Positions 13,146 to 62,396 of a stretch of DNA of 64,000 nucleotides are shown in pieces. The notes under the pieces are model-generated. The model ran no database searches and had not been told where the DNA came from. It saw nothing but the letters and a program-made list of their open reading frames with translations. A program made the position numbers and the translations under genes. Location: the sequence record MN871449.1, one strand, 5' to 3'. Position 1 is the first letter of the stretch. Each line of letters begins with the position of its first letter.

Positions 13146-14009
13146 ATGTTTAAAGTTACGTTTGATGACCAACCGGTCCTTTATGAGAATATGACTTTTC
13201 CGGGTGGCGAGGAACATATCACAATTAACCGTCATGGGCTACCGCCCCATGATATCGGCGTTGTTAAAATAGAAGGAAGTATCAAATCTTCCACCGAGGC
13301 AGTGCGTCTACTGTTACTGGTCGACGCTATTCGTCGTATTGGGAAATACACTGCGAAAACAGAACTCCATTTAATTGTGCCTTATTTCCCGTACGCGCGA
13401 CAAGACCGTGTCTGTAATGCAGGCGAATCGTTTTCACTCGGCGTTTTTGCTGAACTGTTCAATAGCCTGAAAGCAGACCGAGTGCTGATACACGATCCGC
13501 ATTCTAACGTTACTCCGGCACTGATCAAAAACCTCGTCGTCCTGGAACAGTCCAAAATTGTCTACAATTTATTGGCTAATTGGATTCGGGAAAATAACGT
13601 CGTATTAGTCTCCCCTGACGGTGGTGCGGCGAAGAAAACTGAAGAGTTGGCAAAACTACTCGGCGGGGTGCCTATCGTTTACGCAAACAAAAAGCGCGAT
13701 ACTAAAACCGGCAACATTCTCGACATTACGTTATTGGACAATGACAATATCGAAGGTCGTAATTTGTTGGTTGTCGACGACATCTGCGATGGTGGGTGGA
13801 CTTTCACTGAGCTGGCGAAAAAGCTCAATACCCAAAACCCGAAATCGCTCAGTCTCTTCGTGACCCATGGAATTTTTTCTAAGGGCCTGGGCGAACTCTC
13901 TATCGCTTTTGATCAGATTTTCTCAACCAACGTTTGGTGGGAAAATATCACTGACGACGGGTTACCAACCCAATCTTATTTAACTGCTAAAGATGGACGC
14001 GTGAAATGA
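13146..14009 (+). CDS. prs: PRPP-synthetase-like enzyme (NARP1 Adps-type ADPR pyrophosphokinase)
   Basis: FPGGE, PYFPYARQDR, DPHS, SPDGGA, VVDDICDGGWT, VTHGIFS. Confidence 0.9.
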   Translation: MFKVTFDDQPVLYENMTFPGGEEHITINRHGLPPHDIGVVKIEGSIKSSTEAVRLLLLVDAIRRIGKYTAKTELHLIVPYFPYARQDRVCNAGESFSLGVFAELFNSLKADRVLIHDPHSNVTPALIKNLVVLEQSKIVYNLLANWIRENNVVLVSPDGGAAKKTEELAKLLGGVPIVYANKKRDTKTGNILDITLLDNDNIEGRNLLVVDDICDGGWTFTELAKKLNTQNPKSLSLFVTHGIFSKGLGELSIAFDQIFSTNVWWENITDDGLPTQSYLTAKDGRVK

Positions 14010-15787
14010 CCAACCCTTTACTGAAAGACCCAAAGTTCTATACTGAAGATCCGCTGGTTTTCCTGCTGTGCGATGCCTACAAAACTGGGCACATCAACCA
14101 ACAACCTCTGGGCACTGACAGCTTCTTTGAAAACCTGACGGCACGTAGCCATACGTACTTCAATACGCCACTGGACTTCGACGGTTCGGTGTTCATGGGA
14201 ATGCAGCGCCTGGTTCTGCGTTGGTTGGTAGGGAGTTTCGATAACTTCTTTAAAGCGCCGTTCAACGAATCGGAGGCAGAATACCTTCAGTACATGGACG
14301 GTGTTCTGGGTAAAGGTGTGGTGAAATCCGCTCACCTGAAAGCGCTTCACGAACTGGGTTATATCCCACTGGAGATCCGTGCGGTGCCGGAAGGCTCACT
14401 CGTCCCTATTCGTGTTCCGTTCCTGACGATTGAAAACACAGTTGACGGCTTCGGGTGGCTGACGGGTTATTTCGAAGACCTCTGGAGTAACGAACTCTGG
14501 AAGCCATGTGTGCTGGCAACGAAAGCGTTGCACTTCCGTCGAGTGTTAGAACAGTACGCTAACGAAACGGGTGCGGCAAAAGCCTTTATCGACTACCAAT
14601 CCCATAACTTCGCCCTGCGCGGTATGTCGGGGATGTTCGATGATGCCAACAGTTCAGTCGGTCAATTGATCTACTTCAAAGGGAGCGATAGCTTCCCTTC
14701 GGTCTGGACAGCGAATCGCTTTTATAACCCAGAAGGCGATATGCCGATTTCTGAAATCGCCGGGAGTGTACCCGCTACAGAGCACAGTGTGACCTGTCTG
14801 AATATCGCGGTCTATGTCGAGCAGTTACAAGCTACTCCGGGATATCGCGATGCGACTGAAGCGGAACTACTGTCGAAAGCGGAAGAACTTTTCCAACGTC
14901 GACTGATCACCGAAGTTTATCCGTCTGGCGTTTTCAGCTTCGTCAGCGATACTAACGACTTCTTCGATACCATCACCACCAAAGCCATCGCTAATAAAGA
15001 TGCGATTATGGCGCGTGACGGTAAACTGGTCTATCGTCCGGATAGCGGTAATCCGTATCACATCCTCTGTGGTTATACTTGGGATGGCGATAATCATCTT
15101 TCCGCTGGTATTTATCCTGACCCGCGAATTGGTGGAAAAACGCTCTATTCCGAAATAGGTCGAGAAAAGACGGAAGAATTCCTTCGTCGTTTTTCTATTG
15201 AAAACGGATACGAATGCTATTGTATCGACAACGTTTTCTATTCGACTAAAAGCGGTAAACCTATTTCTTTGGAAGAGAAAAAAGGGGCGGTACAAATCCT
15301 CTTTGAAATCTTCGGCGGGACAACCAATGCTGCGGGTTACAAAGAACTGGACCCTCACGTCGGTTTGATCTACGGGGATGCGATCACATTGACTCGCATG
15401 ACTCAGATCCTTTCTCGTTTGAAAGCGAATGGGTTCTGTAGTTCCAACGTGGTCTTTGGTGTGGGCAGTTTCGAATTCCAGTATGTTACCCGTGACACCC
15501 TGGGCATCGCCATGAAGGCGACCGCTGGGAAGGTTAACGGTAAACATTACTCTATCGCGAAAAACCCGAAAACCGACGATGGTACTAAGAAATCAGCGAA
15601 AGGTTATCTGATCGTTGCGAAGGGCGAGAACGGAAAACTCGAACTCCGTGATAACCTGACCCGTGAAGAGTATGAAGCGCTTCGCGGTAGTGAGGTTGAC
15701 GCGATGCGGACTGTGTACCTGAACGGCGACGTGAAAGTACTGGAAAGTCTTCGTACTATTCGTCAACGTGCGGCGCAGTGGTTGTAA
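14006..15787 (+). CDS. nadV: nicotinamide phosphoribosyltransferase-like enzyme (NARP1 Namat-type)
   Basis: CDAYKTGH..Q, HNFALRG, SVPATEHSV, RPDSGNP, GLIYGDAIT, GVGSFEFQYVTRDT, KNPKTDDGTKKSAKG; ATGA coupling to prs. Confidence 0.9.
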   Translation: MTNPLLKDPKFYTEDPLVFLLCDAYKTGHINQQPLGTDSFFENLTARSHTYFNTPLDFDGSVFMGMQRLVLRWLVGSFDNFFKAPFNESEAEYLQYMDGVLGKGVVKSAHLKALHELGYIPLEIRAVPEGSLVPIRVPFLTIENTVDGFGWLTGYFEDLWSNELWKPCVLATKALHFRRVLEQYANETGAAKAFIDYQSHNFALRGMSGMFDDANSSVGQLIYFKGSDSFPSVWTANRFYNPEGDMPISEIAGSVPATEHSVTCLNIAVYVEQLQATPGYRDATEAELLSKAEELFQRRLITEVYPSGVFSFVSDTNDFFDTITTKAIANKDAIMARDGKLVYRPDSGNPYHILCGYTWDGDNHLSAGIYPDPRIGGKTLYSEIGREKTEEFLRRFSIENGYECYCIDNVFYSTKSGKPISLEEKKGAVQILFEIFGGTTNAAGYKELDPHVGLIYGDAITLTRMTQILSRLKANGFCSSNVVFGVGSFEFQYVTRDTLGIAMKATAGKVNGKHYSIAKNPKTDDGTKKSAKGYLIVAKGENGKLELRDNLTREEYEALRGSEVDAMRTVYLNGDVKVLESLRTIRQRAAQWL

Positions 15788-18521: not shown

Positions 18522-18884
18522 ATGAAAAAGATGATTTTAGCAGTTTTACTGGCGGGTGTTTCTCTTAATGCGGTCGCTGTCGATTGCCGTGGCCATCTCA
18601 AATCTGTGATGGGTGAATATTTCTCAGAGAAACTTCTTAACGGGGGTTCTGTGGAAAACCTTGCCTACCACAAATGGGTAGAGGTAACGGGTCCTCTCGA
18701 ACCGGTAGGGGCCTATTACCAGGGCGGTGTCAGGGTGAAAGAACACGTTAAAGTGTTGCCACTGGGATTATTGGCAATGGACAGGAATAGTAATAGCTTC
18801 ACTGTCAACGCGGCCGTAGCATACAACGAAATCAGTTGCGAAGTTTACGGAATCGAAATTAATGAATTTAAGGCGGGGAAATGA
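18522..18884 (+). CDS. exported protein (signal peptide)
   Basis: MKKMILAVLLAGVSLNAVA|V. Confidence 0.7.
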   Translation: MKKMILAVLLAGVSLNAVAVDCRGHLKSVMGEYFSEKLLNGGSVENLAYHKWVEVTGPLEPVGAYYQGGVRVKEHVKVLPLGLLAMDRNSNSFTVNAAVAYNEISCEVYGIEINEFKAGK

Positions 18885-27166: not shown

Positions 27167-27523
27167 ATGAAAAAGATCATTCTTATTTTAACGTTGGTTT
27201 TCCCTTTCTTCGCTAATGCAACAGCGATTATGTTCGAGGATCAAAACTCTAAATGGACGATCACTGATAACCGCGCGGTCATCTTTGCGAACGGCAAGAA
27301 GTACATCTGCACCGATCCAGAAATCGTCAATGACCAGGTCGATAACGATGGCTTTGTTTACTCCGCCGACACCTACGTTTGCGGGGATCGTTTTTACTTC
27401 GCACTGAAAAGCTATAACAAAACCAATTTATTCCTTTTACGTATTTACGACGGTAAACGTGAAAAGGTGGTCATTGAAAAGCTGGTAAACAAAAACCAAT
27501 TCCGTTCTCTCTCCAGTTCTTAA
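27167..27523 (+). CDS. exported beta-rich protein
   Basis: MKKIILILTLVFPFFANA|T; two Cys. Confidence 0.7.
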   Translation: MKKIILILTLVFPFFANATAIMFEDQNSKWTITDNRAVIFANGKKYICTDPEIVNDQVDNDGFVYSADTYVCGDRFYFALKSYNKTNLFLLRIYDGKREKVVIEKLVNKNQFRSLSSS

Positions 27524-27535
27524 AAGGTGCTCAAC

Positions 27536-27874
27536 ATGAAAAAGATTTTTCTCATTTGTTCGGCAGTTCTCTTAGCCGTTTTCACTACCTTCTCTGCACA
27601 GGCGGTGACTGAAACTTTTCGTAGCGGTTATAATCGTGTAACGGTATCTGGCGACAGGGCTTTCGGTGTTTTTGGCGGGACTAATATAGGCTGCCAGTAT
27701 ATGGGCCAGCAAGGTAGTCAATATAAATGGAGTTGTAACAGCGATGACTACCAGTTGGTCTTAGAAAACCATGACAACGAGCAGGTGGCGGTATTAGGGT
27801 TATTCTACAACCGTATGGGTAAATACGTTTCTACAATGGAAGTCCCGTATACCCAAATTAAAACGGTAAGATAA
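27536..27874 (+). CDS. exported beta-rich protein, likely paralog of upstream gene
   Basis: MKKIFLICSAVLLAVFTTFSAQA|V; two Cys. Confidence 0.7.
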   Translation: MKKIFLICSAVLLAVFTTFSAQAVTETFRSGYNRVTVSGDRAFGVFGGTNIGCQYMGQQGSQYKWSCNSDDYQLVLENHDNEQVAVLGLFYNRMGKYVSTMEVPYTQIKTVR

Positions 27875-29972: not shown

Positions 29973-32192
29973 TCAATCGTCAAGTAACACTGAAATACGT
30001 ATTTCTTTAATGTAGTTATTTGGCACGTTATTAGTCATAGTGACAAGTAACTCCAACGCATTGTCTAACCCATTAACAGAACCTCGCATAGGGACATACC
30101 CCAAGGTGTACGCCTCCGGTGAGGAGTTTGCCGTGTTAGAGGAGGGTTGACAAACAATAGTTGTATCTTGCGGATTCATTGTATTGTCAACAGTGGAAAC
30201 TTTACTGTTGGTCAATTCAGTGAACAAAGTGTTACCGATGTTACCGTCCCATGAAGGGAGTCGACGTAAAGTCATAGCGAAATTCGTTGCACCGTTAGCG
30301 TTACCCGCTAATGAGTTTTTATTAAATGTCAGATAAGCCCTGACATCGCCAACTCCATTGACATGGGTTGGTATCGGAATGCGTAAAATAACGTCTGTAG
30401 TGCCAGTGGCGATGAAACGTCCATCGTACCGTGTCAGTTCACTTGCCGGGGTCACTAAGTACGCTGTCGGGGTGACATAAATGTAACCGATCTTATACCC
30501 TTTTATCGTATTGTTCTGGAAGAAACCGAATGCAGACTGGGTTTCTCGGTAGAACGGTTTCTGGGGTTTGAACTTCAGCACATTGAATTGGGCGTTCGAT
30601 GTTCTGAAATAAGTGTCGTAAATAACATTGCTCACTTTAAGATCATTGAAGATCCCGTATTTCCCAGCGATACTAATACCGTTATCTGAATTTGTCACTT
30701 CGATATTGCTAAAAAAGTTTGGCTTGTTAGCGTCATTAAAGGTCGTATCAGAATAAAATGTACTAAGACCATTCTTTGCATTGTTTACAAATAAACCGCG
30801 GACAATACAACCTTTCGTGTTATTGATTAACAGCCCCTCAGAACTTGCAGAACGCCCCAGATTCATGATTTTGATGTTAGTGAAGGAAACATCTTCACAA
30901 AGGTTAGTTGCACCGCCAGAGCCGTTTAGTGTACCATCTACTAAAGGCCCATATTGGATGGCGTTATCGACGTGTACGTCTGTCGAATTCGCGACGAAGA
31001 AAAGAGTATAGAACGATTTGTCCTGATTTGGAGTTAAGCAATAAAGGTTTCGGATATTGACGCGATAACAAGATGGCGTCTCTGGGATAGTATCTGACCC
31101 CACGTTAACTAACTCAGTCCAACCGTCGCCGTAAATAGAATCGATTTCGATATCCATGGCATTATTCAAGTTGATACCGTAACCGCCATTTTTATTCGAC
31201 CCCGTGTAAATGGCAACTAAATACAAATCGCTAATAGAGCAATTTCTACATTGCGCTAAGCTCTGATTATCGCGAAGATATTGCTTTTGCGCTGGGTTAA
31301 CGAAGGTATTGTCAGCCACGTTCCCGCCAGTAACAGAACCAGTTCGCCAAACTGCCATCCCTTTGTTTCTGTTTGCCTCGCGTGAACTCCCCATCACAAA
31401 ACCACCACGACCTTTTGCAGAAAGCAATGGGTTCTCAAAAATAATTTTTGAGGCCATTCCTTGACCTTTCATTACTGTATTCGCAAAAAAGAACACCGGG
31501 AAGGTAATGCGATAGGCAACCACTGGCGCCGGAACATTTATCGTTCCACCGCCGTATTGGTAAACACCAAACGTTGCGCCCTGGAAAGCAAAATAATCAT
31601 CAGTAACCCCGTCCCCTTTGGCACCGAAATCTAACACCGAAAAAGACCCTTTGTCCGGAACACGCTGCCAGACCCATTGCCCATCATACCGGACATGAAT
31701 TCCTAAGTCATTCTCAACAGTAGAGTTTCGAATCGCCTTAAAGTGGCCGGCTCCTGTAGTCCCATTTGCGTAGTAGCTTTTCAGATAAATCGTTTGCCCT
31801 TCGTAAGACGGTTGGATCGATGTTAAATCTGAAAATTGATTCGCTTGGATTTGGATATGCTTTAGTAACGCAGGGATATAAATGGTTTTCTTCGTGCCGC
31901 TATTACCGATAACCGCATTTGCGCCGATGTTTGTTCTGATATACTCATTAACCGATAATTTGTTACTGTCGACATAAACGTAGAAGAGTTGGTTTTCTAC
32001 CGTTGCAGCAATCCCTTCCTCCACTGTCTCAAAGGCATGGTCAAAATCAAAAAGATCCCGAACCTGACTCAACGTGATCTTATTCGTTGCTAAAGTACCG
32101 CTAGATAACGTCAGACTTAGCGGTAACTCTCCTGCCATATTCCCGCTAGTCAAACTGTTTAATTCACTGATCTTATTCCCGAAGTCACTCAT
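29973..32192 (-). CDS. tailspike / capsule depolymerase with KISEL-type N-terminal anchor domain
   Basis: QFSDL....P..EGQ.IYLKSYY..G..GAG.F neck; SVLDFGAKGDGVTDDYFAFQ pectate-lyase-3 motif; beta-helix; AAGG RBS favours ATG 32192. Confidence 0.9.
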   Translation of the reverse strand: MSDFGNKISELNSLTSGNMAGELPLSLTLSSGTLATNKITLSQVRDLFDFDHAFETVEEGIAATVENQLFYVYVDSNKLSVNEYIRTNIGANAVIGNSGTKKTIYIPALLKHIQIQANQFSDLTSIQPSYEGQTIYLKSYYANGTTGAGHFKAIRNSTVENDLGIHVRYDGQWVWQRVPDKGSFSVLDFGAKGDGVTDDYFAFQGATFGVYQYGGGTINVPAPVVAYRITFPVFFFANTVMKGQGMASKIIFENPLLSAKGRGGFVMGSSREANRNKGMAVWRTGSVTGGNVADNTFVNPAQKQYLRDNQSLAQCRNCSISDLYLVAIYTGSNKNGGYGINLNNAMDIEIDSIYGDGWTELVNVGSDTIPETPSCYRVNIRNLYCLTPNQDKSFYTLFFVANSTDVHVDNAIQYGPLVDGTLNGSGGATNLCEDVSFTNIKIMNLGRSASSEGLLINNTKGCIVRGLFVNNAKNGLSTFYSDTTFNDANKPNFFSNIEVTNSDNGISIAGKYGIFNDLKVSNVIYDTYFRTSNAQFNVLKFKPQKPFYRETQSAFGFFQNNTIKGYKIGYIYVTPTAYLVTPASELTRYDGRFIATGTTDVILRIPIPTHVNGVGDVRAYLTFNKNSLAGNANGATNFAMTLRRLPSWDGNIGNTLFTELTNSKVSTVDNTMNPQDTTIVCQPSSNTANSSPEAYTLGYVPMRGSVNGLDNALELLVTMTNNVPNNYIKEIRISVLLDD

Positions 32193-32258
32193 TACCGTTA
32201 CCTTTCTCATGGGGTTATTGTCATAGGAAAATTACCGTTCTCTTTTCACTACCGTTCC

Positions 32259-44389: not shown

Positions 44390-44416
44390 CAGGCAATTGG
44401 AGATGAACCCATCTCC

Positions 44417-44439
44417 AATTTTTTTAACATCTATATAGC
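44417..44439 (+). promoter_or_regulatory. putative early promoter (copy 6), overlapping terminator 44395-44425
   Basis: AATTTTTTTAACATCTATATAGC. Confidence 0.55.
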
Positions 44440-44506
44440 TACAGTGATTTAGGAAAGATAAAACCTTTCCGTAAATAAAATAACTAAACCTATTGGAGTG
44501 CTATTA

Positions 44507-44917
44507 ATGTTACTGACTGCGAAAACTATCGAAAACGTACAAAAAGCTATTAATAAAAGTTCTTATACTGTTAAAGAGATTAAAGTCAAAGCTATTTATA
44601 CCACACCAAAAATTTCGGTGGCGCTTTACATTTTAGACGGCGAATTAGTTGCTAGTCAGCTGTATCCTTTCAAAGGGGCTAAAATGTCAAATCTCATTTT
44701 AGATGCGGCGGCCTTCTGCGACTACTATATACTAGAAGAGATTTATCGTGGTCTTGAAAAAGACGACACCGCAGAATTGATTGAGTCTTTATGGCCTTGC
44801 AACGATAAACGCAATGTCGTCGAGATCAGCTCCTTGAAAGAAAATAAAATCTCAAAGGAATCATTTAATACCCTCGCCAACAAATTCAACAACAACCATC
44901 AACGTCGCCGTAAATAA
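44507..44917 (+). CDS. hypothetical protein
   Basis: GGAG RBS before ATG 44507. Confidence 0.7.
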   Translation: MLLTAKTIENVQKAINKSSYTVKEIKVKAIYTTPKISVALYILDGELVASQLYPFKGAKMSNLILDAAAFCDYYILEEIYRGLEKDDTAELIESLWPCNDKRNVVEISSLKENKISKESFNTLANKFNNNHQRRRK

Positions 44918-44928
44918 GAGAAACTAAA

Positions 44929-45300
44929 ATGAAACCACGCTTTGCTTTAATAGGGATTGCCTTCTTTGCGGCGAATGCCTCTGCCCACTACTTCGGTCCA
45001 GTTAACCAAACTAACTCCATCGGCATGGACGGCTATTCTCAAATTGAGATGTACATCGATACGAAAGAATCCGGTGATTTTGTTTTTCGTGTCGGGAATA
45101 AGGTCATTGCGGATAAGAAAGGGATCCCCTACAAAAAATATGTTTTCGGTGGTGAAAGAGCGACCTTTCCGATGACCATCAATAACAAATTTATCCAGCA
45201 GCACGATAATGGACAGAAATACGTCCCTATCTGCGCAATGCAGGTAATACCCAACGTGCAGTTCCAGCCCGAGGTGTGCTTCAATGTCCATGTTGAATAA
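44929..45300 (+). CDS. exported Ig-like protein (putative fimbrial chaperone-like)
   Basis: Signal ...ANASA|HYFGP; beta-rich; C-terminal Cys pair. Confidence 0.55.
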   Translation: MKPRFALIGIAFFAANASAHYFGPVNQTNSIGMDGYSQIEMYIDTKESGDFVFRVGNKVIADKKGIPYKKYVFGGERATFPMTINNKFIQQHDNGQKYVPICAMQVIPNVQFQPEVCFNVHVE

Positions 45301-45688
45301 AGTCTTACTCTTTACAGTTACACTGGCTTGTTCAACAATGGCTTTTGCCGATGCGCCTTACATCATGAACAACACAGCTGAAAATCGTGGCCGCGTACAA
45401 AACGGTGATATCAGCTGTGAGGTCAGCCGCCCGCAAGCAACGATTAACGTCGGGGCGTACGGAAATAATGGTAGTCAGTATCGTTATGCAGATAACGATA
45501 AAGGCGGGTATGTTAGTATAAGTATCCCCTTAGGCGGTGACGATAAGATGGCCGAAAGCTGCGAGCGGTTAGCTGATCTTAGTCGTCGCCAAAAAGAATT
45601 ACAGATCCGTCGTTTAGAGATGGAAATGGAACGCATGGAACAGAATCAGCAAATGGATTCTCAACGTGCGATGCGTGTCGATCCGTAA
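45284..45688 (+). CDS. exported protein with amphipathic beta-hairpin and coiled coil (putative oligomeric OM pore)
   Basis: Signal ...TMAFA|D; GGYVSISIPLG; ESC..L..L.....E.QI..LE heptads. Confidence 0.5.
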   Translation: MSMLNKVLLFTVTLACSTMAFADAPYIMNNTAENRGRVQNGDISCEVSRPQATINVGAYGNNGSQYRYADNDKGGYVSISIPLGGDDKMAESCERLADLSRRQKELQIRRLEMEMERMEQNQQMDSQRAMRVDP

Positions 45689-45730
45689 GTTGTAATAAAA
45701 CATTAACTCAATCTCTCTTTTGGAAAACAA

Positions 45731-46225
45731 ATGAAAAACGTAAAATTCGCTGTGGCTGCTCTGGTACTGTCTCTGTCTTCTACTGCGTTCGCTGCGCAGG
45801 AAATGGTATGGGATGCAGAATACACTCAAACTCAAATGTCATGTGGGATCGATTTTGCCAATGGTCAGCAGACCGGCGGGATCCTTCTGAAAGGCGAGCA
45901 AGGTACCGATAATCAAAAGGCAGTTAACTTCGTACTGAAAAGTAACACCGCTCGCCAGAGCTGGAAACTGACCGAAGCCAAATTGACCCAAAACACCGGC
46001 CGCTTCGCCTTCGCTGATAACCTCATGACCATCAGCGATCGTTCGCAAACTTCTGTATTCATCAACAACCAGGAATACGCGTGGTCCGCTGCTGCTCAAA
46101 ATCAGCAGATCCAGGGTAACAGCAAAACGCTGGCTATCGCGCCGAAAATCAACCTCGACGCACAAGAGATGCCGCTGGGCACTACTCACATCCAGGGCAA
46201 AGTTGTCCTGACCTGCGAAAACTAA
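45731..46225 (+). CDS. exported fimbrial-subunit-like protein
   Basis: Signal ...STAFA|A; N-proximal Cys; beta-rich; C-terminal G...QGKVVLTC strand. Confidence 0.55.
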   Translation: MKNVKFAVAALVLSLSSTAFAAQEMVWDAEYTQTQMSCGIDFANGQQTGGILLKGEQGTDNQKAVNFVLKSNTARQSWKLTEAKLTQNTGRFAFADNLMTISDRSQTSVFINNQEYAWSAAAQNQQIQGNSKTLAIAPKINLDAQEMPLGTTHIQGKVVLTCEN

Positions 46226-46292
46226 TCTACCCCTGTCTCCGGTTCAGAGAACCGGAGACGTTCTAAAACGTTAACGTTAAGGAAGATATAAA

Positions 46293-46712
46293 ATGTTTTA
46301 CTCGCTGACCCTACTTTCCAAAATACTCTCTTTGTTCTCCTGCTTCGCCCTGGCTATTCTTATTATTGCGAAAATCCCGTTATTAGAGGATGCAGTAATT
46401 TACTGGGTGATCACGTTGATCACAATACGGTTACTCTGGCTGGGTTTCCAGTTCTTCTCCTTCCCTGACCTCTCAAGAATATCGCTGACGCCAGAGAACA
46501 AAAGTAAACTTCGCCAAAAAATAGAGAAGCATCTGACTTTCACTGGCGGGATGAACGTTATGCTGCGTTTAATCGTGGCTGTGGTGCTATTCATTCTGCT
46601 CTGCGTTCACCATGAGTACTTATTAGGTATTCTGTCTATCGCTACTTTCTTTGTCCGAATGTTTTTCGAGATTGAAGCGATAATCGAAATTGAATCGCTA
46701 AAACGCGTATAA
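46293..46712 (+). CDS. membrane protein (4 TM)
   Basis: AAGGA RBS; hydrophobic segments. Confidence 0.7.
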   Translation: MFYSLTLLSKILSLFSCFALAILIIAKIPLLEDAVIYWVITLITIRLLWLGFQFFSFPDLSRISLTPENKSKLRQKIEKHLTFTGGMNVMLRLIVAVVLFILLCVHHEYLLGILSIATFFVRMFFEIEAIIEIESLKRV

Positions 46713-46746
46713 AAAAGAGAGGGCGTTTGCCCTCTCTTTTTTTTTG
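46711..46746. terminator. bidirectional terminator
   Basis: A6-GAGAGGGC-GTTT-GCCCTCTC-T-run. Confidence 0.85.
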
Positions 46747-46751
46747 TTTCT

Positions 46752-47321
46752 TTACGGCGTTTGGAACGGGTTGATCAGAAATGCAAACTGGTATTTCTCA
46801 AATCCTTCTGCTTTCAGTTTCCATCCAATGTAAACCTTAAACCGGCGTTTCTTCACGTGGTCGTCACGCATGAAGTAGACCATCCAGTAATGGGACTTAT
46901 AGGTGCCTTTAACATCAAACCCTTTACCCTCTAAAACAGGTTGACGGAATTTGTCTTTTGGTGCACCTAACACGCTAATAGAAAAACCGTACAATGGATT
47001 GCGGTATAACCAAAAGACACGGGCGACGTAAATTTGCGTCCATTCAGGGAGTACCTTTACCCAGAGGGAGTGTTTCTCTTTCCAACCGGAATCCCCGTCT
47101 AAACTATTGTCCGGTGTGTCGAACCATTTCAGCCATTTCGGTAGTTTACCGTCCTTCGTCGCAAAGGCCGGTAGAAACGGTGTGACAATGACGCAAATGA
47201 TCAACGCTGCGAAGTAGATCAATAAAAAACTCAGCCAATGCAAGAAGCCCAATAACGGAACAGGATGTCCCCAAAGCGTAATTTTCTTCATCGTATTCAA
47301 TCCCCAAGGTAGATGTTTCAT
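46752..47321 (-). CDS. conserved phage membrane-associated protein
   Basis: N-terminal TM; LPKWLKWFDTPDNSLDGD and WLYRNP.YGF motifs. Confidence 0.7.
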   Translation of the reverse strand: MKHLPWGLNTMKKITLWGHPVPLLGFLHWLSFLLIYFAALIICVIVTPFLPAFATKDGKLPKWLKWFDTPDNSLDGDSGWKEKHSLWVKVLPEWTQIYVARVFWLYRNPLYGFSISVLGAPKDKFRQPVLEGKGFDVKGTYKSHYWMVYFMRDDHVKKRRFKVYIGWKLKAEGFEKYQFAFLINPFQTP

Positions 47322-50229: not shown

Positions 50230-50700
50230 ATGAAAAAATTCATTGCTGCTTCACTCATCGCCCTGTCCTCTATCGCGTCCTTCAATGCCATGGCCACCGT
50301 CAATAATTGGACCGAATCTTATCAGCAGGGTACTCTGGAATTCTACACCGAAAACAGCGACGGTTTCTCACTCGCATTCTCTTGCCGCGATACTGGCGAC
50401 CAATGGCCGGTTCAAGCGCTGTTTCTGAACGGTACTAACGGCAACTCGCTTTCCAGCGATGATGATCGCTACGCGCTGGTTATCGAAATGGCCGGTCAGA
50501 AGTACCAGATGATCTCTCCTGCTTCTACCGTTGGGGCAAGTAACTGGCGCTTGTTCTTCGAAGGCGTTAAGAAAACCAAAGCAAAAACCGTTAAGGTTTA
50601 CGTACAAGATCATCCGGAGACCTTCGTTGTTTTCTCAACCAACGGGCTCAAGAAAATCGTCGCCGAAAATAAAGGCGGTAACTGCTTCTTTCTCGGCTAA
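50230..50700 (+). CDS. exported protein (signal peptide)
   Basis: MKKFIAASLIALSSIASFNAMA|T; two Cys. Confidence 0.75.
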   Translation: MKKFIAASLIALSSIASFNAMATVNNWTESYQQGTLEFYTENSDGFSLAFSCRDTGDQWPVQALFLNGTNGNSLSSDDDRYALVIEMAGQKYQMISPASTVGASNWRLFFEGVKKTKAKTVKVYVQDHPETFVVFSTNGLKKIVAENKGGNCFFLG

Positions 50701-52039: not shown

Positions 52040-52206
52040 AAAAATTCACCGACGACGATTTCTTTGCCGCTATGAGCGAAATCGGGATTCACTTAGACAA
52101 CGAACAAAAGAACCGCGTTTTAGAAGGAGAAGAAAATGAAAAAGATTACTTTGATGGCCATCGCTCTACTGTTCACTGCTACGACCGCCCAAGCTGCGCC
52201 GAATAG
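52036..52206 (+). CDS. small acidic protein
   Basis: ATGA coupling; MKKFTDDDFFAAMSEIG... Confidence 0.45.
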   Translation: MKKFTDDDFFAAMSEIGIHLDNEQKNRVLEGEENEKDYFDGHRSTVHCYDRPSCAE

Positions 52207-52483
52207 CGCTTGTATCGATCGCGTCAACACTGAGGTTAAAAACGCGGTGACGTTGTTCCCTGGCGTTAACCCTAAAACCGTTCATGTCACCTTTATGCGT
52301 GCTAAGCCTTCTTCGCTTTCTGCCATGGAAGGCGAGGCGCAGACGCCAGGGTATAAAGTTTACAGTACGGTCTCTTTCACGCAGAAAAAGGAAACTGTTC
52401 GTTGGTTGAATGAAAGCGGTGTTGTTTTTGACGGAGATGACACTTGTTCTGTACTTTACACTAATCTGGATGTCGCGGGATGA
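52136..52483 (+). CDS. exported protein (signal peptide)
   Basis: AAGGAG RBS; MKKITLMAIALLFTATTAQA|A; two Cys. Confidence 0.75.
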   Translation: MKKITLMAIALLFTATTAQAAPNSACIDRVNTEVKNAVTLFPGVNPKTVHVTFMRAKPSSLSAMEGEAQTPGYKVYSTVSFTQKKETVRWLNESGVVFDGDDTCSVLYTNLDVAG

Positions 52484-55789: not shown

Positions 55790-56665
55790 TTAGATCGCCA
55801 CACCAGGTTTAGACAGGCTCGAAACTAATTGTTCGATATACCCGTCGTCTCTTGCCGCCACGTCTGCTTCACGATCGCTCAGGAAGGCAGGTTGGGCGTT
55901 AAGATCGATACCCGTCTGGGACGCGCGGTCCAGCATCATCTGACCGAGCTTATCAACGCCGCGACCTACCATCTGCAGACCGGTCATCGTCAAGGATACC
56001 TGGAGCTGTTCCGGTGAAGAGGTCTGATCTTTTGACATGCGCATTTCTGGGCCTTGGCCGGTCGGTTGCATGTTAGTGATCAGCGTAGAACGCAACGCGT
56101 AACGTTCGGTCGGATCCGGTTCCACAAACAGGATGGAGAAGGTGTTGTAATCCGGGTAAGTTGCAGCCGGGGTAATACCACCTTTACCAATAATCCCTGC
56201 GACGTTGGAGTTCGGTTCGCCCATGAAGTACAGGATGTAGTTGTTCCAGTAACGGGAAACCGGCATCCCTACTTTTTCTACCCAGGTAAAGACCGGGACA
56301 GAACGAGCGCGACGAACCTTGGACAGCGTTTGCATCATTTCGCCGCCGCCACCGAACGGGGTTTCAACGTGTTCTACTTCCAGCGTGTAATCAATACCGT
56401 CGATCGTACGAGCGTGCATCTCGATTAGCGCTTTCAGTGAACCGCCCCATTTTTCCGGGTCATCGGTGTCTTTGAAGCAGTTAGGCAACTCCATCAGAAA
56501 CGCGATGGTCGGGCGACGAGTATAATCGGCCGCAGCGTGGTAATAACGGAAGTCAGGGGTATAGCCATAGGGTGCTGGGATTTCCAAGTTCGTCACGGGA
56601 CCATTGGCCCCGTTAGCGTACGAACTATTAGCACTCATGACTGTGTTCGGATCTTTCTTAGCCAT
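55790..56665 (-). CDS. tail tube protein
   Basis: 291 aa directly downstream of sheath, 8-nt overlap; phiKZ-like tube size and position. Confidence 0.85.
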   Translation of the reverse strand: MAKKDPNTVMSANSSYANGANGPVTNLEIPAPYGYTPDFRYYHAAADYTRRPTIAFLMELPNCFKDTDDPEKWGGSLKALIEMHARTIDGIDYTLEVEHVETPFGGGGEMMQTLSKVRRARSVPVFTWVEKVGMPVSRYWNNYILYFMGEPNSNVAGIIGKGGITPAATYPDYNTFSILFVEPDPTERYALRSTLITNMQPTGQGPEMRMSKDQTSSPEQLQVSLTMTGLQMVGRGVDKLGQMMLDRASQTGIDLNAQPAFLSDREADVAARDDGYIEQLVSSLSKPGVAI

Positions 56666-58727
56666 TTGCTAATTCCTCTCTGGTGTATGCGACAGAAGAC
56701 ATATCCATTACGGTACGGAACGCGTTAGCACCGAAGTCAATGCGCATAGACCAAGAATAACCACGTTCTTTATCGGCCTGGGTAATCTCAGAATGCGGCG
56801 TAAAGATCAGGCGGTTATCGAAGGCACCGGCACCGCGGGTGCTCACGATTTCGTCAGAGCGCTCAATCAACTGATCGTCGGTGAGTTTCTGAGTACCGCT
56901 CAGGTCACGCCACGCTTCGAAGGCGAAGCGGTTCAGGTTAGCCACGCACAGACCCACGATAGCCGCCTTCAGTACGGAACCTTGTTCGCTGTAGAACGAC
57001 TGCTGGCCCGGGTAGAACTGCGAACCGGTATCGTAGTCTTCTACGTAAACCAGGTTGTTGTTCCACTGCGCACGACGAACGCGCCAGGATTTATCGAGGT
57101 TGTTAATATTTTTAACCACCTGGACTTTCCGGTTCTCACCTTCATCCACCGCGTATTCCGGTTTGAGTACACCGTCAGAAGCACCGGCATACTGACAGTA
57201 AGCACGGAAACGGTCGAGAGTCAGCGGGACCGCCAGCTTACGCGTAGTTTCCGTGTAATAACCTGCACCACCTACGATCATACCGCGGAACGCCGGGGTA
57301 CCGAAATCAGAGGAGTCCGGGAAAGCGTTTACGCGAGACATCAGGGACAGCGCGATCGATTCTTCTTCTTCATTGCTGTTGAAGTCGAGACTGATGTCCT
57401 GAGTCGACAGGGCGATCCAGGTGTCTGCACGCAGACCGATCAGTTGCGGAATCAGTTGTTTGGTCTTCAGGTCGAAACCGGAGTCCCAGAACGCATTGAA
57501 CGGATAACGCGCGTAGTTACCGATATTGAAAGATGCGCCGCTGGACATGTTGAACAGCACCAGGTTAGCGGCAGCGTTGAAACTGGCGTTACCCAGCGTA
57601 CCGTCACCACCGCCTTGCAGGTAGTTGGTGGAGGTTTCTGTCAGCGTGACGCCACCGTCCAGTACGCCCATAATCTGAACAGCGTGATACGGTACACCTT
57701 CTACCGTCTGCGCGCCGAACAGGTTAATTGTGTAGAGATCCGCTTCATCGTCAGAAACCGTACCGAAGGTGGATTCCACCGACTGTACTGCTTTCAGGAC
57801 GGTATCAATGTTGGACTGATACAGGTACGGCGCATCGATCGGCGACATCAGGTAAGTCGATGGATCTTCGTCGTTGTAACGACTTTCGATACGTTCCGCG
57901 AAATCGTAAACCACTTCGGTCTGCGGATCGACTAAGTTCTCACCGAAACCGACCGACAGAGACGCTTCATTATAGATCGTCTCAAAAATAGTTGGTGAAC
58001 TGTTTTTATCGGTACGGGTCAGGAGCTGGAAGCGGTACAGGAACGATTTGATACGTTCTTGCAGATCGGCATCAGCGGCCTGAGTCGAATTGACAGTCGG
58101 TGCCCAAATACGGATCGCTGTATTCGCGCCGAGAGACGATTTATAACGGCAACGGAAATCGGCCAGTGGCGTGATCGTTGACGGGTTCTCAGCGGTACCG
58201 ATTGTCCCCGCAGAAGCGGTACGTTTTTTGTACTGGGAAACGCCCGACTCGTCCGTCTCGATTTTAGAGAGAACAAAGCGGAACTTGATCCCGTCTACTT
58301 GCGTGGCCAGCGGAATTTTGTCACCGTTGGTATCGGTTTTATAAGTTCCGTCGTCGTTACGCTCATAGTCGTCGATTTTGGTTTTTACCCAATCGACGGA
58401 GAGACCCAGCGTGGCGACGTCAGGGATATCTGCCGGTTCCAGACGCAAGGCCAGGAACTGGTTACCCGCTGCAATCGCTTCCTTAATAAAAGGAGTACTG
58501 TGGGTCGCATAAACGCCGGAAAGGTTGGTAGTTTCGCTACCGTAAATGTCTTCGAATTTTACCGGATCGATCCAGGTAGGGACAGTTGGACCTTTCTGGC
58601 CGAAGAACATGATGAGCGGTCGATGAAGAGCCAGGGTCGTCGTTGAACCCGTAGAACGGGTGAACGAAATATCCTTCGTACCGCGGTAATAAATTCTGGG
58701 TGTTGATCCCGTAATTTGTTCTGACAT
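56658..58727 (-). CDS. contractile tail sheath protein
   Basis: 689 aa; YPF..FWDSGF...TK, RG.IV, sheath C-domain; recalled as near-identical to phiKp24 sheath. Confidence 0.92.
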   Translation of the reverse strand: MSEQITGSTPRIYYRGTKDISFTRSTGSTTTLALHRPLIMFFGQKGPTVPTWIDPVKFEDIYGSETTNLSGVYATHSTPFIKEAIAAGNQFLALRLEPADIPDVATLGLSVDWVKTKIDDYERNDDGTYKTDTNGDKIPLATQVDGIKFRFVLSKIETDESGVSQYKKRTASAGTIGTAENPSTITPLADFRCRYKSSLGANTAIRIWAPTVNSTQAADADLQERIKSFLYRFQLLTRTDKNSSPTIFETIYNEASLSVGFGENLVDPQTEVVYDFAERIESRYNDEDPSTYLMSPIDAPYLYQSNIDTVLKAVQSVESTFGTVSDDEADLYTINLFGAQTVEGVPYHAVQIMGVLDGGVTLTETSTNYLQGGGDGTLGNASFNAAANLVLFNMSSGASFNIGNYARYPFNAFWDSGFDLKTKQLIPQLIGLRADTWIALSTQDISLDFNSNEEEESIALSLMSRVNAFPDSSDFGTPAFRGMIVGGAGYYTETTRKLAVPLTLDRFRAYCQYAGASDGVLKPEYAVDEGENRKVQVVKNINNLDKSWRVRRAQWNNNLVYVEDYDTGSQFYPGQQSFYSEQGSVLKAAIVGLCVANLNRFAFEAWRDLSGTQKLTDDQLIERSDEIVSTRGAGAFDNRLIFTPHSEITQADKERGYSWSMRIDFGANAFRTVMDMSSVAYTREELANG

Positions 58728-59837: not shown

Positions 59838-62396
59838 GTGCGTGTAATGAATTCCGTAACCGAAAGTTTCCTTCTCGATCATGCACGCACGAATTTGTGG
59901 TGTGCACCTATTCAGGATCGTCAGGTCATTCTCGATCTGACGCGAATCAGTCGAGACAGTGGTGCGAAAGTTTCCAGTACCATTCTCTGGGTTGATACCC
60001 CATTACCTACCGAAGGCGACGTCTATCATCTTTATCAGATCGGGGCAAACAGTCGTTGGCGTACAGGTCTCCCTGACGTTCGCGGAAAATGGATGGCGTT
60101 GGGACCTTACAGCGAAGCGACTGCGCTGATCATTGACCTCTATCTGGAAACGGGCGTTAAACTCCCGCTCTTTAGCAGTTACGTTCTTCGTACCTACGAC
60201 GACAATTTGATCATTGCGATTAAAGAGCACGCTATCTTTGGCGAGTTAAGTGAAAAGAAAGCGTATCTCAGAATTTACAACAACGCCTTTTTCCGTTCAG
60301 AGCGAAGTAATAACATCGGTCAGAAAGTGGCTTATATCGGCAGAGAGATTACTAAGCAAACTGATATCGCTGCGTTTATTAATGGGTTGCGGCCGCTGCA
60401 AACCTTAACCGGTGTAACCAATATTTACCATAATGGCGTGTGGAAGCCGGAAATCAAATCGACTGATATTTCCATTGGTGACCTGGTTGAGGCAGTTTAC
60501 GACGCCGCGGTGAGTCACGTGGTGGACTTCAAAGTCTCGTCGCTGTACGACTATACGTCGACGTTAGACAACCTGAAGAAGTACCTGCTGCACCCGAGTA
60601 AAAATACGCACGATAACGAAATCTATTACGTCGACGATATCGATTTGTTCATGTACAAAGTCGGCGCGAATGATTCGGTTTCAGGTCGCTATTATCACCG
60701 CAATAAAGAGAACAGTCTGCGTAACGTAACTCATGCTGATTACAGTATTCCGACGGGTTATGTTTCGGCTTATCTGAATGATGGCTGGACAACGTACGAC
60801 AACCTTTATATTCGTCTTCATCTTCGTGAGTCCGGTTTTAAACGCCCTCTCATCGACGAGGTGAATCGGATTGAAACACTTTACCGTTTAAGCGACACTG
60901 ACATTCTCAGAGCAATGATTGGACTCGATTCCACGTTGGCTGAGTGGCGTGTAGAGAACCTGGAAAACTCTCTTTATACGGCGATCATGCGAAACTTCTG
61001 GGGCTCGTTTACAGCGACGGACGTCATCAACGCTTACGGTTACAACGCATTAGCAAAACTCTTTGCGTTAAACCCAACGAAGGTGACGCCTTCCTCGAAC
61101 GGTGGTTTTGTCGATCTACCCTTTGGACTCTCGCTCTGTTCTACGCTCTTTGAGTACGACGAAGACGGGGTGTTGTTGGGCTGGAATCAGCACGGTTACT
61201 CGGAACGCTACTTCGTGAAGAATGAGCGGGCAGCGCTGGTTGAGGGGTTCATGGGGTGGGGTAAGAAAGCCATTACCTGGGCGCCCAGTAACAACAACTA
61301 CACGCTGGACGATAAGTACCAATACTACTTCTTTAAAGCGGCGATCAACAAAGGAGTTGTCTCCGACGTCTGGGAACCGGCCGTAGAAGGGACGGATTAC
61401 ACGGTCTTAAATAATGTCGTCACGTGGATTCACGTCAAGGCCAGAAACATGGGCCTGATCCTCAGTAGCTCTGAGGCGCTTGTATACGATCAGGTTGTAG
61501 GGAGTTCGGACGGGATCTTCCGCTTTACACTGACCTACGGTAAGACGCTCGGGACGATTCTTCCTATTCGGCCACAACAACTGCGCGTGTGGATGAATGG
61601 CCATCCGTTGATTGAAGGGCTCGACTATATCCTGGACGGAAATAAAGGAACGGTCATCACCAATCGTTACTACGATGAAACGTTAGGCAACAGTCAAAAC
61701 TTTACTTTTGCCTGTTTAGGTTGGGAAACGCCAAGCGCGAAGTACAAAAGACCGCTGAATATCGGATTCGTGGATCACGGTTATGTCAGTGTGAACGGTA
61801 CGTTTGATATTCGTGACGACAAGGTTATACGTACGATTATTGACGGGAAAGTGGTTGACCCTTCAACAGTGCCGTTTATTGAAGACGCTGACGAAAAACA
61901 AATCCCGTTACTCCCTAACGGCTTACCTTACTGCGAAGAGACGGTTTTCGTTCCGCTGTACGGGATATCGACGAATGCGAACGCTGAGTTGATTCAGATG
62001 GGTGCCGAAAGCGATAAGCGTGTCAGTGACTACATGACGTTGAAGTACCCGGAGAAGGTCTTAACCGGCCCTAACCCAATCAGCGAACGTTATCGGATGT
62101 TCTCGGTAGTGATCACACGACTGATCTTCGATCTTGATAACGGAACCATCACTGAGCCGTTGAACGTTAATGACAAAGTCTCGCTTGACCGTGTCATGAA
62201 GAACTACAGCGAGTACCTCGATATTGACCCGTGCCGAAGCGTCTGGAATACAAACTACATTTTCATTGACGCACATCCGTTTAGCTCCGCCGTCGCGGTA
62301 ACCACAAAGCGCTGGAAGTTCCTTCAGAACGTCAATCAGTATTACCTGAATAATCGTCTGTCGCTTAATAACTATTTCTTTATAAAGGAATCCTGA
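59838..62396 (+). CDS. large baseplate-type virion structural protein
   Basis: LLDHA..NLWC.P.QD.Q N-terminus and WMNG..LIEGLDY, typical of this phiKZ-like gene. Confidence 0.75.
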   Translation: MRVMNSVTESFLLDHARTNLWCAPIQDRQVILDLTRISRDSGAKVSSTILWVDTPLPTEGDVYHLYQIGANSRWRTGLPDVRGKWMALGPYSEATALIIDLYLETGVKLPLFSSYVLRTYDDNLIIAIKEHAIFGELSEKKAYLRIYNNAFFRSERSNNIGQKVAYIGREITKQTDIAAFINGLRPLQTLTGVTNIYHNGVWKPEIKSTDISIGDLVEAVYDAAVSHVVDFKVSSLYDYTSTLDNLKKYLLHPSKNTHDNEIYYVDDIDLFMYKVGANDSVSGRYYHRNKENSLRNVTHADYSIPTGYVSAYLNDGWTTYDNLYIRLHLRESGFKRPLIDEVNRIETLYRLSDTDILRAMIGLDSTLAEWRVENLENSLYTAIMRNFWGSFTATDVINAYGYNALAKLFALNPTKVTPSSNGGFVDLPFGLSLCSTLFEYDEDGVLLGWNQHGYSERYFVKNERAALVEGFMGWGKKAITWAPSNNNYTLDDKYQYYFFKAAINKGVVSDVWEPAVEGTDYTVLNNVVTWIHVKARNMGLILSSSEALVYDQVVGSSDGIFRFTLTYGKTLGTILPIRPQQLRVWMNGHPLIEGLDYILDGNKGTVITNRYYDETLGNSQNFTFACLGWETPSAKYKRPLNIGFVDHGYVSVNGTFDIRDDKVIRTIIDGKVVDPSTVPFIEDADEKQIPLLPNGLPYCEETVFVPLYGISTNANAELIQMGAESDKRVSDYMTLKYPEKVLTGPNPISERYRMFSVVITRLIFDLDNGTITEPLNVNDKVSLDRVMKNYSEYLDIDPCRSVWNTNYIFIDAHPFSSAVAVTTKRWKFLQNVNQYYLNNRLSLNNYFFIKES

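Follow-up and report, generated by a model that had tools for sequence, protein, structure and literature searches.

Three consecutive genes of the Klebsiella jumbo phage KpXa_1 encode small proteins that carry features of Sec export and are inherited together across phage lineages. The genes lie at positions 44929-46225 of a 64,000-nucleotide (nt) stretch of sequence record MN871449.1, the whole of which is referred to here as the window. Over this region the window is 100% identical to KpXa_1 (MN871449; record title 'Serratia phage KpXa_1'), a Siatvirus with a genome of 304 kb and Klebsiella pneumoniae as its host. Genes 1, 2 and 3 (hereafter the trio) each have a cysteine pair, co-occur strictly and in a fixed order, are under selection and behave as a cassette that in one lineage is allelic with an autotransporter gene; gene 3 is predicted to adopt a pilin-like fold and gene 1 an immunoglobulin (Ig)-like fold. 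The best explanation, which we put forward tentatively, is that the trio is an exported module that uses strand complementation to build a structure in the envelope or on the surface, possibly a pilin-like fibre. The trio is not a canonical chaperone–usher system and does not belong to that family, because it has neither a two-domain chaperone nor, within the module or close to it, an usher, and matches no pilin sequence family.

A co-inherited and mobile gene cassette

The preliminary description of this DNA, made from the sequence alone, had singled out three consecutive open reading frames (ORFs), each with a signal peptide and a cysteine pair, and the coordinates, cleavage sites and conservation all agree with it. 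Gene 1 (44929-45300; 123 amino acids (aa), about 104 aa when mature), gene 2 (45284-45688; 134 aa, about 111 aa mature) and gene 3 (45731-46225; 164 aa, about 143 aa mature) lie close-packed on the plus strand, with genes 1 and 2 overlapping by 17 nt. Signal peptides were called by pattern, that is, a basic N terminus, a hydrophobic core at least 10 residues long and free of charges, and a small-x-small cleavage site. All three proteins show this Sec-type pattern, with a mean core hydropathy of 2.5-2.7 and predicted cleavage at the sites already named (ASA/H, AFA/D and AFA/A), and the pattern is retained in all homologues of genes 1-3. The cysteine pairs (C102 and C117 in gene 1, C45 and C93 in gene 2, C38 and C162 in gene 3) are invariant across the enterobacterial-phage homologues, an arrangement that makes periplasmic disulfides likely, and none of the three proteins has a conserved lipobox. 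Three signal peptides in a row are not overwhelming by themselves, because a crude scan was positive for 9 of the 93 window ORFs; the trio is more than chance because it is colinear in all adequate loci and each of its genes is conserved by selection, with ratios of non-synonymous to synonymous substitution rates (dN/dS) of 0.04-0.05.

Genes 1-2-3 are colinear, in the same orientation and close-packed in 24 of the 25 loci holding gene 3 that were fetched after tblastn and profile searches, the lone exception being a 726-bp contig that carries gene 3 only. The carriers span at least eight phage lineages: Siatvirus, Maaswegvirus (FBKp24 gp270-272), Miamivirus (gp130-132), Eowynvirus (gp039-041), the Henunavirus pEp_SNUABM_01 (gp241-243) and several metagenomic lineages, including a 375-kb contig. 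Scans of IMG/VR and metagenomes added few loci. Although the trio is constant, the genes flanking it vary between genera. Compared with the 97%-identical phage KpLz-2_45, dN/dS is 0.048 for gene 1, 0.038 for gene 2 and 0.040 for gene 3, and all three genes are thus under strong purifying selection. The proposal that they form one exported module, which depended on their occurring together in other genomes, is upheld by the colinearity and by these ratios. An idea that the trio evolves faster than its flanks was discarded, as identity to FBKp24 is 40-91% in the flanks versus 64-86% in the trio. Outside phages, no copies were found among 185,579 bacterial species genomes scanned with short conserved patterns from genes 2 and 3, a scan that distant relatives would escape, and none among 72,556 plasmids searched by tblastn with gene 2 only.

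Comparisons of close relatives show how the trio comes and goes. The phages Eowyn and KpGz_1 are about 80% identical, and a segment of 1,355 bp with the trio in Eowyn (L004:4213-5567, giving the fetched locus and the positions within it) corresponds to 56 bp in KpGz_1. Likewise, the 95-99% identity between pEp_SNUABM_01 and pEa_SNUABM_55 reaches to about 10 nt from either end of the trio, and the same tRNA-Arg/tRNA-Cys slot holds the trio in the former (L005:4272-5506) and one 387-aa gene in the latter (L024:2285-3471). Besides a signal peptide and a long coiled coil, the product of that single gene has the YadA_anchor domain of Pfam (E = 6e-13, 49 bits versus a cut-off of 22.7); a 573-aa version of it, annotated 'adhesin', fills the slot in phage Hena1 (L025:2184-3905). 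Because the trio is cleanly absent in one case and swapped in the other, it is a discrete, dispensable and mobile accessory cassette. In one lineage, the sister Erwinia phages of Henunavirus, it is allelic with a trimeric-autotransporter gene, and the slot, which lies inside a tRNA cluster, resembles a hot spot for 'surface display'.

Predicted folds and sequence features of the three proteins

The AlphaFold model of gene 3 (predicted local distance difference test (pLDDT) 80.8, predicted template-modelling score (pTM) 0.71, from a 14-sequence alignment) begins with a disordered signal peptide and a 16-residue extension that lacks regular structure, followed by a core of 6-7 strands, of which a long C-terminal strand is the last. 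Both invariant cysteines fall in this core, C38 in the first strand and C162 at the end of the last. The best fold match in the Protein Data Bank (PDB) is the CFA/I major pilin CfaB (E = 2.5e-3, probability 1.0, template-modelling (TM) score 0.42-0.46), followed by FimA/FimI, SafA, CsuA/B, PapA/E/H, the PapG pilin domain and CupB6. About 34 of the 50 top matches are chaperone–usher pilins or pilin domains, and the filaments of TasA and uromodulin, which are strand-insertion polymers, are also among the matches. As none of these matches falls below E = 1e-3, they amount to a fold-level resemblance and not to proof. The claim that gene 3 looks like a fimbrial subunit gains support, albeit weak, from the predicted fold, and a fold of the Ig-like or pilin kind, on which the preliminary description had staked its reading, is predicted for gene 1 (Ig-like) and for gene 3 (pilin-like).

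Against viral models, gene 3 matches two unnamed proteins (E = 2.6e-7 and 5e-4), the better of which is A0A2I7S9Y1. Its N-terminal extension is conserved beyond what would be expected of a linker, with E24, V26 and A29 invariant and W27 nearly so, and it has an alternating hydrophobic pattern. Such a pattern is what a donor strand would need, and the extension could serve as one. At the sequence level the family is isolated: a profile search of 1.84 billion representative proteins returned only 9 matches, all of them close family members, and neither gene 3 nor its 15 homologues matched Pfam, NCBIfam or PDB sequences, which leaves them outside the fimbrial families in those collections. Recent acquisition from a host was considered because of the higher GC content of gene 3 and was rejected, since its GC content at third codon positions (GC3), 0.576, is within the window range of 0.495 +/- 0.061 and no bacterial copy was found.

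Gene 1 is modelled as a single-domain, seven-strand Ig-like beta-sandwich (pLDDT 72.7, pTM 0.61, from a 6-sequence alignment), with its cysteine pair C-terminal. The best fold matches are FnIII-type domains of glycosidases, antibody, titin and complement MG domains, and CsgH; the chaperones of chaperone–usher systems appear only at ranks 11 (Caf1M), 38 (DraB) and 46 (FimC). Neither PapD_N nor PapD_C of Pfam is matched by gene 1, and it does not qualify as a two-domain PapD-like chaperone. The preliminary description had called gene 1 a compact beta-sandwich like a periplasmic chaperone: the sandwich reappears in the model, but a specific likeness to chaperones does not, and a chaperone role is neither supported nor excluded by the predicted fold. 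Two other ideas about gene 1 did not hold. A copper-binding brace formed through the N-terminal His of the mature protein was dropped because this residue is replaced by Phe in the FBKp24 clade, and no family match pointed to it; paralogy of genes 1 and 3 was rejected when the similarity seen by hhalign proved to be confined to the signal peptides.

Among the Klebsiella jumbo-phage lineages gene 2 is the most conserved member of the trio, and no other member has detectable homologues in Vibrio phages. Its alignment shows a conserved N-terminal region rich in Gly, Asn and Tyr, two amphipathic beta-type segments around a Tyr-/Asp-rich loop in which hydrophobic positions alternate and are conserved, an invariant Pro and then a helical tail with heptad-like hydrophobic spacing. 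C45 stands just before the first beta segment and C93 just after the second; a third cysteine, within the signal peptide, is not conserved. When the alignment is extended with the Vibrio proteins, C93 stays invariant and the counterpart of C45 is shifted by one column. The suggestion that gene 2 contains usher-like strands ending in IPLG was not borne out: it has no match to Pfam Usher at E <= 1, and none of the eight window ORFs of at least 450 aa is an usher.

The one family-level clue to gene 2, and a lead only, is a similarity to the Pfam family OEP (TolC family) in 4 of 13 homologues. Each of the four aligns with one partial repeat in the same register, residues ~44-117 against profile positions 33-105, across the hairpin and the following helix. 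The scores of 11-18.6 bits (best E = 0.0017) lie below the cut-off of 22 and do not place gene 2 in the TolC/OEP family. The gene 2 product of the window also matches PHROGs 37374 and 1755, both of unknown function, weakly (E = 1.3e-3 and 5.9e-4). Pfam YadA_anchor is matched neither by gene 2 nor by its homologues, and this domain occurs only in the allelic gene of the sister phages. Across Pfam, NCBIfam, PHROGs, PADLOC and PDB sequences, the trio proteins gave no above-threshold match, singly or as profiles; in PADLOC neither the trio nor its neighbours matched anything at E <= 0.1, which gives no indication of a known anti-phage defence system.

Vibrio-phage relatives and genomic setting

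The preliminary description had pointed to a similar trio in marine phages, and a comparable set does occur in Vibrio phages, with homology to the Klebsiella trio demonstrated for gene 2 only. A tblastn search with a divergent gene 2 homologue matched 182 Vibrio phage records. The relationship is seen both by tblastn (E = 7e-10) and by hmmsearch (E = 1.5e-12), and the Vibrio homologue matches PHROG 37374 with E = 2e-49. Three unrelated types of Vibrio phage, Ceto (Demerecviridae, 128 kb), 1.205.O (58 kb) and 51E28.4 (83 kb), share one layout: two large ORFs without signal peptides come first, followed by an exported protein of 149-156 aa with an N-proximal and a C-terminal Cys, an exported protein of 132-135 aa with two C-terminal Cys and then the gene 2 homologue. 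This order is a rotation of the Klebsiella order, and the pilin-sized and Ig-sized Vibrio proteins resemble genes 3 and 1, respectively, in size, export signal and cysteine placement.

Several observations concern the surroundings of the Vibrio set. The large ORFs just upstream of it encode proteins of 794-967 aa without signal peptides (L020:680-3136, L021:782-3166, L022:1520-4084 and L023:1198-4101), with a conserved N terminus and a divergent remainder, and match PHROG 10818 where scanned; they are possibly receptor-binding tail proteins. We rejected the upstream ORF as a candidate usher, because it has no signal peptide, no Usher match, a PHROG without function and no PDB match. After the trio, 252E42.2, Ceto and 1.205.O encode a conserved lipobox protein of 55-67 aa (L021:4308-4475, L022:5245-5448 and L023:5242-5427), and 51E28.4 (L020) has an HNH endonuclease, with no lipobox gene called there. 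A lipobox-like string is present in some Vibrio gene 2 homologues and lacking in others, and was seen nowhere else in the three families.

In the window, the trio is surrounded by small non-structural genes. An intrinsic terminator-like hairpin at 44395..44420 (plus strand; a T-run after an 11-bp stem) marks where the upstream transcription unit ends, and its equivalent is also found 5′ of the homologous region in FBKp24. It is followed by an AT-rich spacer (44421..44506, plus strand, GC 0.32-0.38) that is the putative promoter region of the unit. A motif at 44423 is conserved with FBKp24, the record of which has a software-predicted promoter at the same place; in a scan of the window this motif recurred nowhere else and no recurrent promoter motif was found, nor was any sigma-70-like site found in the spacer. 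The conservation and the software prediction in FBKp24 are the sole pointers to the early promoter named in the preliminary description, which we regard as putative.

Between this spacer and gene 1 lies an ORF that the preliminary description had omitted, g0 (44507..44917, plus strand; 136 aa, without a signal peptide), the first gene of the apparent unit. It is an annotated coding sequence in LPKP23 and KpLz-2_45, is 63.5% identical to FBKp24 gp269 and had no family match. As g0 is limited to the Siatvirus and Maaswegvirus lineages, it falls outside the conserved trio. The hairpin noted near 46235 is confirmed directly 3′ of gene 3 as a stem-loop at 46234..46260 (plus strand; 12-bp stem, -19.9 kcal/mol, z = -4.6, without a U-run), and none of 200 shuffled sequences was equally stable. 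The corresponding position behind the Miami homologue carries an annotated terminator. The stem-loop ends the trio and is probably an RNA-stabilising element or partial terminator. Downstream, g4 (46293..46712, plus strand) encodes a hydrophobic, multi-pass membrane-like protein of 139 aa that is 52.5% identical to FBKp24 gp273; because it is not beside the trio in the Miami, Eowyn, Henunavirus or metagenome loci, it is a lineage-specific neighbour and no part of the trio. A strong terminator (46711-46742) follows, between g4 and a minus-strand ORF (46752-47321) for a membrane-type protein of DUF7338 / PHROG 2143 (E = 3e-43), another lineage-specific neighbour.

Elsewhere in the window we recognised a tailspike-like protein with a P22-type Head_binding N terminus (10159-12411, minus strand), a nicotinate/nicotinamide phosphoribosyltransferase (14006-15784, plus strand), a depolymerase-like protein with a weak pectate-lyase-like match (29976-32210, minus strand), a phiKZ gp29PR-like protein (56661-58727, minus strand) and a DUF7193 protein (59838-62393, plus strand). 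The crude scan also found Sec-type signal peptides in five more small ORFs (18522-18884, 27167-27523, 27536-27874, 50230-50700 and 52136-52483), among them one adjacent pair, so that the number of small proteins exported by KpXa_1 seems to be considerable. The trio-less KpGz_1 has, about 100 bp further on, an ORF of 439 aa (L026:2096-3415) that is inserted relative to Eowyn and on reading contains a P-loop-like motif. In the Siatvirus phages KpLz-2_45 and LPKP23, which are 97-99.5% identical to the window, every gene of the region is labelled 'hypothetical protein'. Several phages of Klebsiella hosts in the series MN871444-MN871453 were deposited as 'Serratia phage', at least one of them marked UNVERIFIED_ORG, and the trio proteins of 'Stenotrophomonas phage' BUCTxx100 (OR529409) match those of the window with the same identity and scores as do those of Miami-like Klebsiella phages. 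In view of these odd host names and identical scores, the organism names of such records look unreliable.

Models of function and known systems

In the model that we prefer, the trio would be an accessory cassette that moves horizontally among virulent phages and is complete in itself; its products would be exported by Sec and work jointly in the envelope of infected cells. Gene 3 would be the structural subunit, with a pilin-like incomplete Ig fold and an amphipathic N-terminal extension that could act as the donor strand, and gene 1 would be a small Ig-like periplasmic partner that holds or primes this subunit. Gene 2 may form an oligomeric platform or pore associated with the outer membrane, built from a beta-hairpin clasped at its base by the disulfide and from a periplasmic helical bundle. 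The purpose might be an altered surface of the infected cell, through adhesion or aggregation, or through receptor masking and the exclusion of other phages. Polymerisation, exposure at the surface, the role of gene 1, the insertion of gene 2 into the membrane and its assembly into oligomers, and the purpose are what we infer, whereas export features, co-inheritance and predicted folds are what we observe. Thus, from the preliminary reading of a minimal chaperone, usher and pilin set, the exported, co-inherited module and its pilin-like third protein are retained, and the chaperone and the usher are not. A bolder form of the model, which seems unlikely, would make the trio an undescribed, self-sufficient and usher-independent system that secretes and assembles a donor-strand fibre. 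In it, many gene 2 copies would form a 'mini-TolC' hairpin barrel with a periplasmic helical collar, a one-domain Ig protein would substitute for the two-domain chaperone, and gene 3 would form a polymer on the infected cell; the system as a whole would be functionally interchangeable with a trimeric autotransporter adhesin.

A number of points weigh against an exported fibre or similar structure. The fold evidence for genes 1 and 3 comes from shallow alignments, the PDB matches of gene 3 are weak and have a high root-mean-square deviation, and those of gene 1 are generic for Ig-like sandwiches. A Cys38-Cys162 disulfide would tie the first core strand of gene 3 to the last, a link that a donor-strand groove would have to accommodate. 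Gene 2 does not have the C-terminal aromatic residue typical of outer-membrane barrels, and its OEP similarity was not reproduced with the gene 2 product of the window itself in Pfam, or in NCBIfam or PDB sequences; more generally, the searches gave no above-threshold sequence or profile link from the trio to any pilin, chaperone, usher, TolC or autotransporter family. Comparing mature parts by hhalign revealed no demonstrable homology between the pilin- and Ig-sized Vibrio proteins and genes 3 and 1 (E ~0.5). The swap with the YadA-anchor gene backs a surface structure only circumstantially, because hot spots can hold unrelated cargo. Our literature search found no paper on the trio genes, no expression, localisation or microscopy data on them and no virion proteomics of FBKp24; pilins and fimbriae go unmentioned in a 2026 preprint that deals with the envelope-associated proteins of huge phages.

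The closest competitor, a reasonable possibility that we nevertheless consider less probable than a strand-complemented structure, is an envelope-resident complex that forms no fibre. Such a complex, periplasmic or tethered to the outer membrane, would bind and block a component of the host envelope (such as a phage receptor, an export machine or the DNA-entry route) in the manner of the superinfection-exclusion proteins exported by other virulent phages, with the Ig folds as binding modules. That all three proteins are exported and Cys-paired would fit this, as would the generic binding-type Ig domains matched by gene 1 and the dispensability and mobility of the cassette, which are typical of exclusion genes. 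Exclusion genes often adjoin receptor-binding genes, as T5 llp does the gene for pb5, and the Vibrio trio lies directly downstream of two large ORFs, one of which resembles receptor-binding tail proteins; this position favours an envelope-binding complex. However, those ORFs are only putative tail proteins (their PHROG is of unknown function and they have no PDB match), the trio is not beside tail genes in the Klebsiella phages, none of the three families has a conserved lipobox throughout, and the matches of gene 3 are dominated by polymerising pilins and not by generic Ig domains.

The remaining alternatives seem to us improbable, to differing degrees. Gene 3 might be an orphan pilin mimic that joins a chaperone–usher pathway of the host and is displayed by its ushers, or caps and jams them, with genes 1 and 2 as accessories; Klebsiella and Erwinia hosts encode chaperone–usher systems, and the fold matches of gene 3 include the terminator or adaptor subunits FimI and PapH besides major subunits. 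We think such parasitism of host pilus machinery improbable, as gene 3 has no sequence similarity to host pilin families and no counterpart in the pattern scan of bacterial species genomes, and lacks the penultimate C-terminal aromatic residue that classical pilins usually carry; moreover, the module always travels as three genes, which argues for self-sufficiency, and Vibrio phages, the hosts of which have other usher repertoires, carry an analogous trio. Still less probable is a lysis-related or envelope-stabilising module, in which gene 2 would be a spanin-like or Lpp-like coiled coil spanning the periplasm and genes 1 and 3 would influence when the envelope is disrupted. The helical tail and conserved cysteines of gene 2 recall i-spanins, some of its homologues end in Lys as Lpp does, and endolysin-type genes lie 1-3 kb downstream in Vibrio phages and one metagenomic lineage. 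But gene 2 falls short of a spanin, having a cleavable signal peptide instead of a membrane anchor, no conserved lipobox and no conserved lipoprotein partner; its C-terminal Lys is not conserved; no endolysin or holin adjoins the trio in the window, Miami, Eowyn or Henunavirus; the candidate lysis genes of the Vibrio phages are separate from the trio; and Eowyn-like phages can dispense with the cassette. Very unlikely, finally, are virion components such as fibre accessories, the outcome against which the preliminary description had set its own reading. The Vibrio version does adjoin large, probably structural genes, but tailed phages assemble their particles in the cytoplasm and all three proteins have Sec-type signal peptides; in addition, close relatives that are viable isolates lack the cassette, and the neighbours of the trio in the window are non-structural.

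To our knowledge, virulent phages have not been known to make infected cells build pilus-like appendages. If an exported, strand-complemented structure is indeed what the trio specifies, it would be the smallest known machinery of this kind, working without an usher or a two-domain chaperone, and would give phages a new means of reshaping the surface of the host while infecting it, be it for adhesion, aggregation or the exclusion of rivals. Even as an envelope-binding complex, it would be a widespread cassette, found in several lineages of enterobacterial phages, mostly jumbo phages but also a 147-kb Henunavirus, with a recognisably related module in about 180 Vibrio phage records. The natural presence, absence and swap variants among isolated phages open the question to descriptive comparison.

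Among known systems, chaperone–usher pili (CfaB, FimA/FimI, Saf, Csu and Pap) provide the best structural matches of the gene 3 model. Like their subunits, gene 3 is Sec-exported and pilin-sized, with a cysteine pair, a conserved N-terminal extension and a C-terminal beta-strand, and the genes beside it specify a small Ig-like periplasmic protein and another exported protein. Unlike them, it belongs to no pilin sequence family, and its cysteine pair would join the first and last strands, whereas that of pilins joins neighbouring N-terminal strands. The chaperones of those systems have two domains and about 220 aa, as against the one Ig-like domain of about 104 aa in gene 1, and no usher of about 800 aa is encoded near the trio. 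The pili are specified by bacterial chromosomes and plasmids, the trio by virulent phages. With TolC-family (OEP) proteins the likeness is limited to the four gene 2 homologues that align in one register below threshold; with one hairpin and one helix, gene 2 would be about a quarter of a TolC protomer. TasA fibres, curli and Bacillus spore appendages are similarly systems of few parts that polymerise small beta-rich subunits outside the cytoplasm, and TasA is among the matches of gene 3, but there is no family-level similarity, and they involve other envelope types and accessory proteins.

Two further comparisons concern phage proteins. The exclusion proteins T5 Llp, T1/phi80 Cor and T4 Imm and Sp are, like those of the trio, small, exported and dispensable proteins of lytic phages that act on the envelope, and the Vibrio trio lies beside probable receptor-binding genes; they differ in being single proteins, mostly lipoproteins or membrane proteins, with no sequence or fold link to the trio, which is a conserved set of three. 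The YadA-anchor trimeric autotransporters have no sequence relationship to the trio either, they are one protein where the trio is three, and the order of elements in gene 2, beta-strands and then helix, is the reverse of that in the autotransporter anchor. Both, however, are Sec-exported and combine beta-strands with a coiled coil, and in sister Henunavirus phages the autotransporters occupy the exact slot of the trio, which suggests a comparable role at the cell surface.

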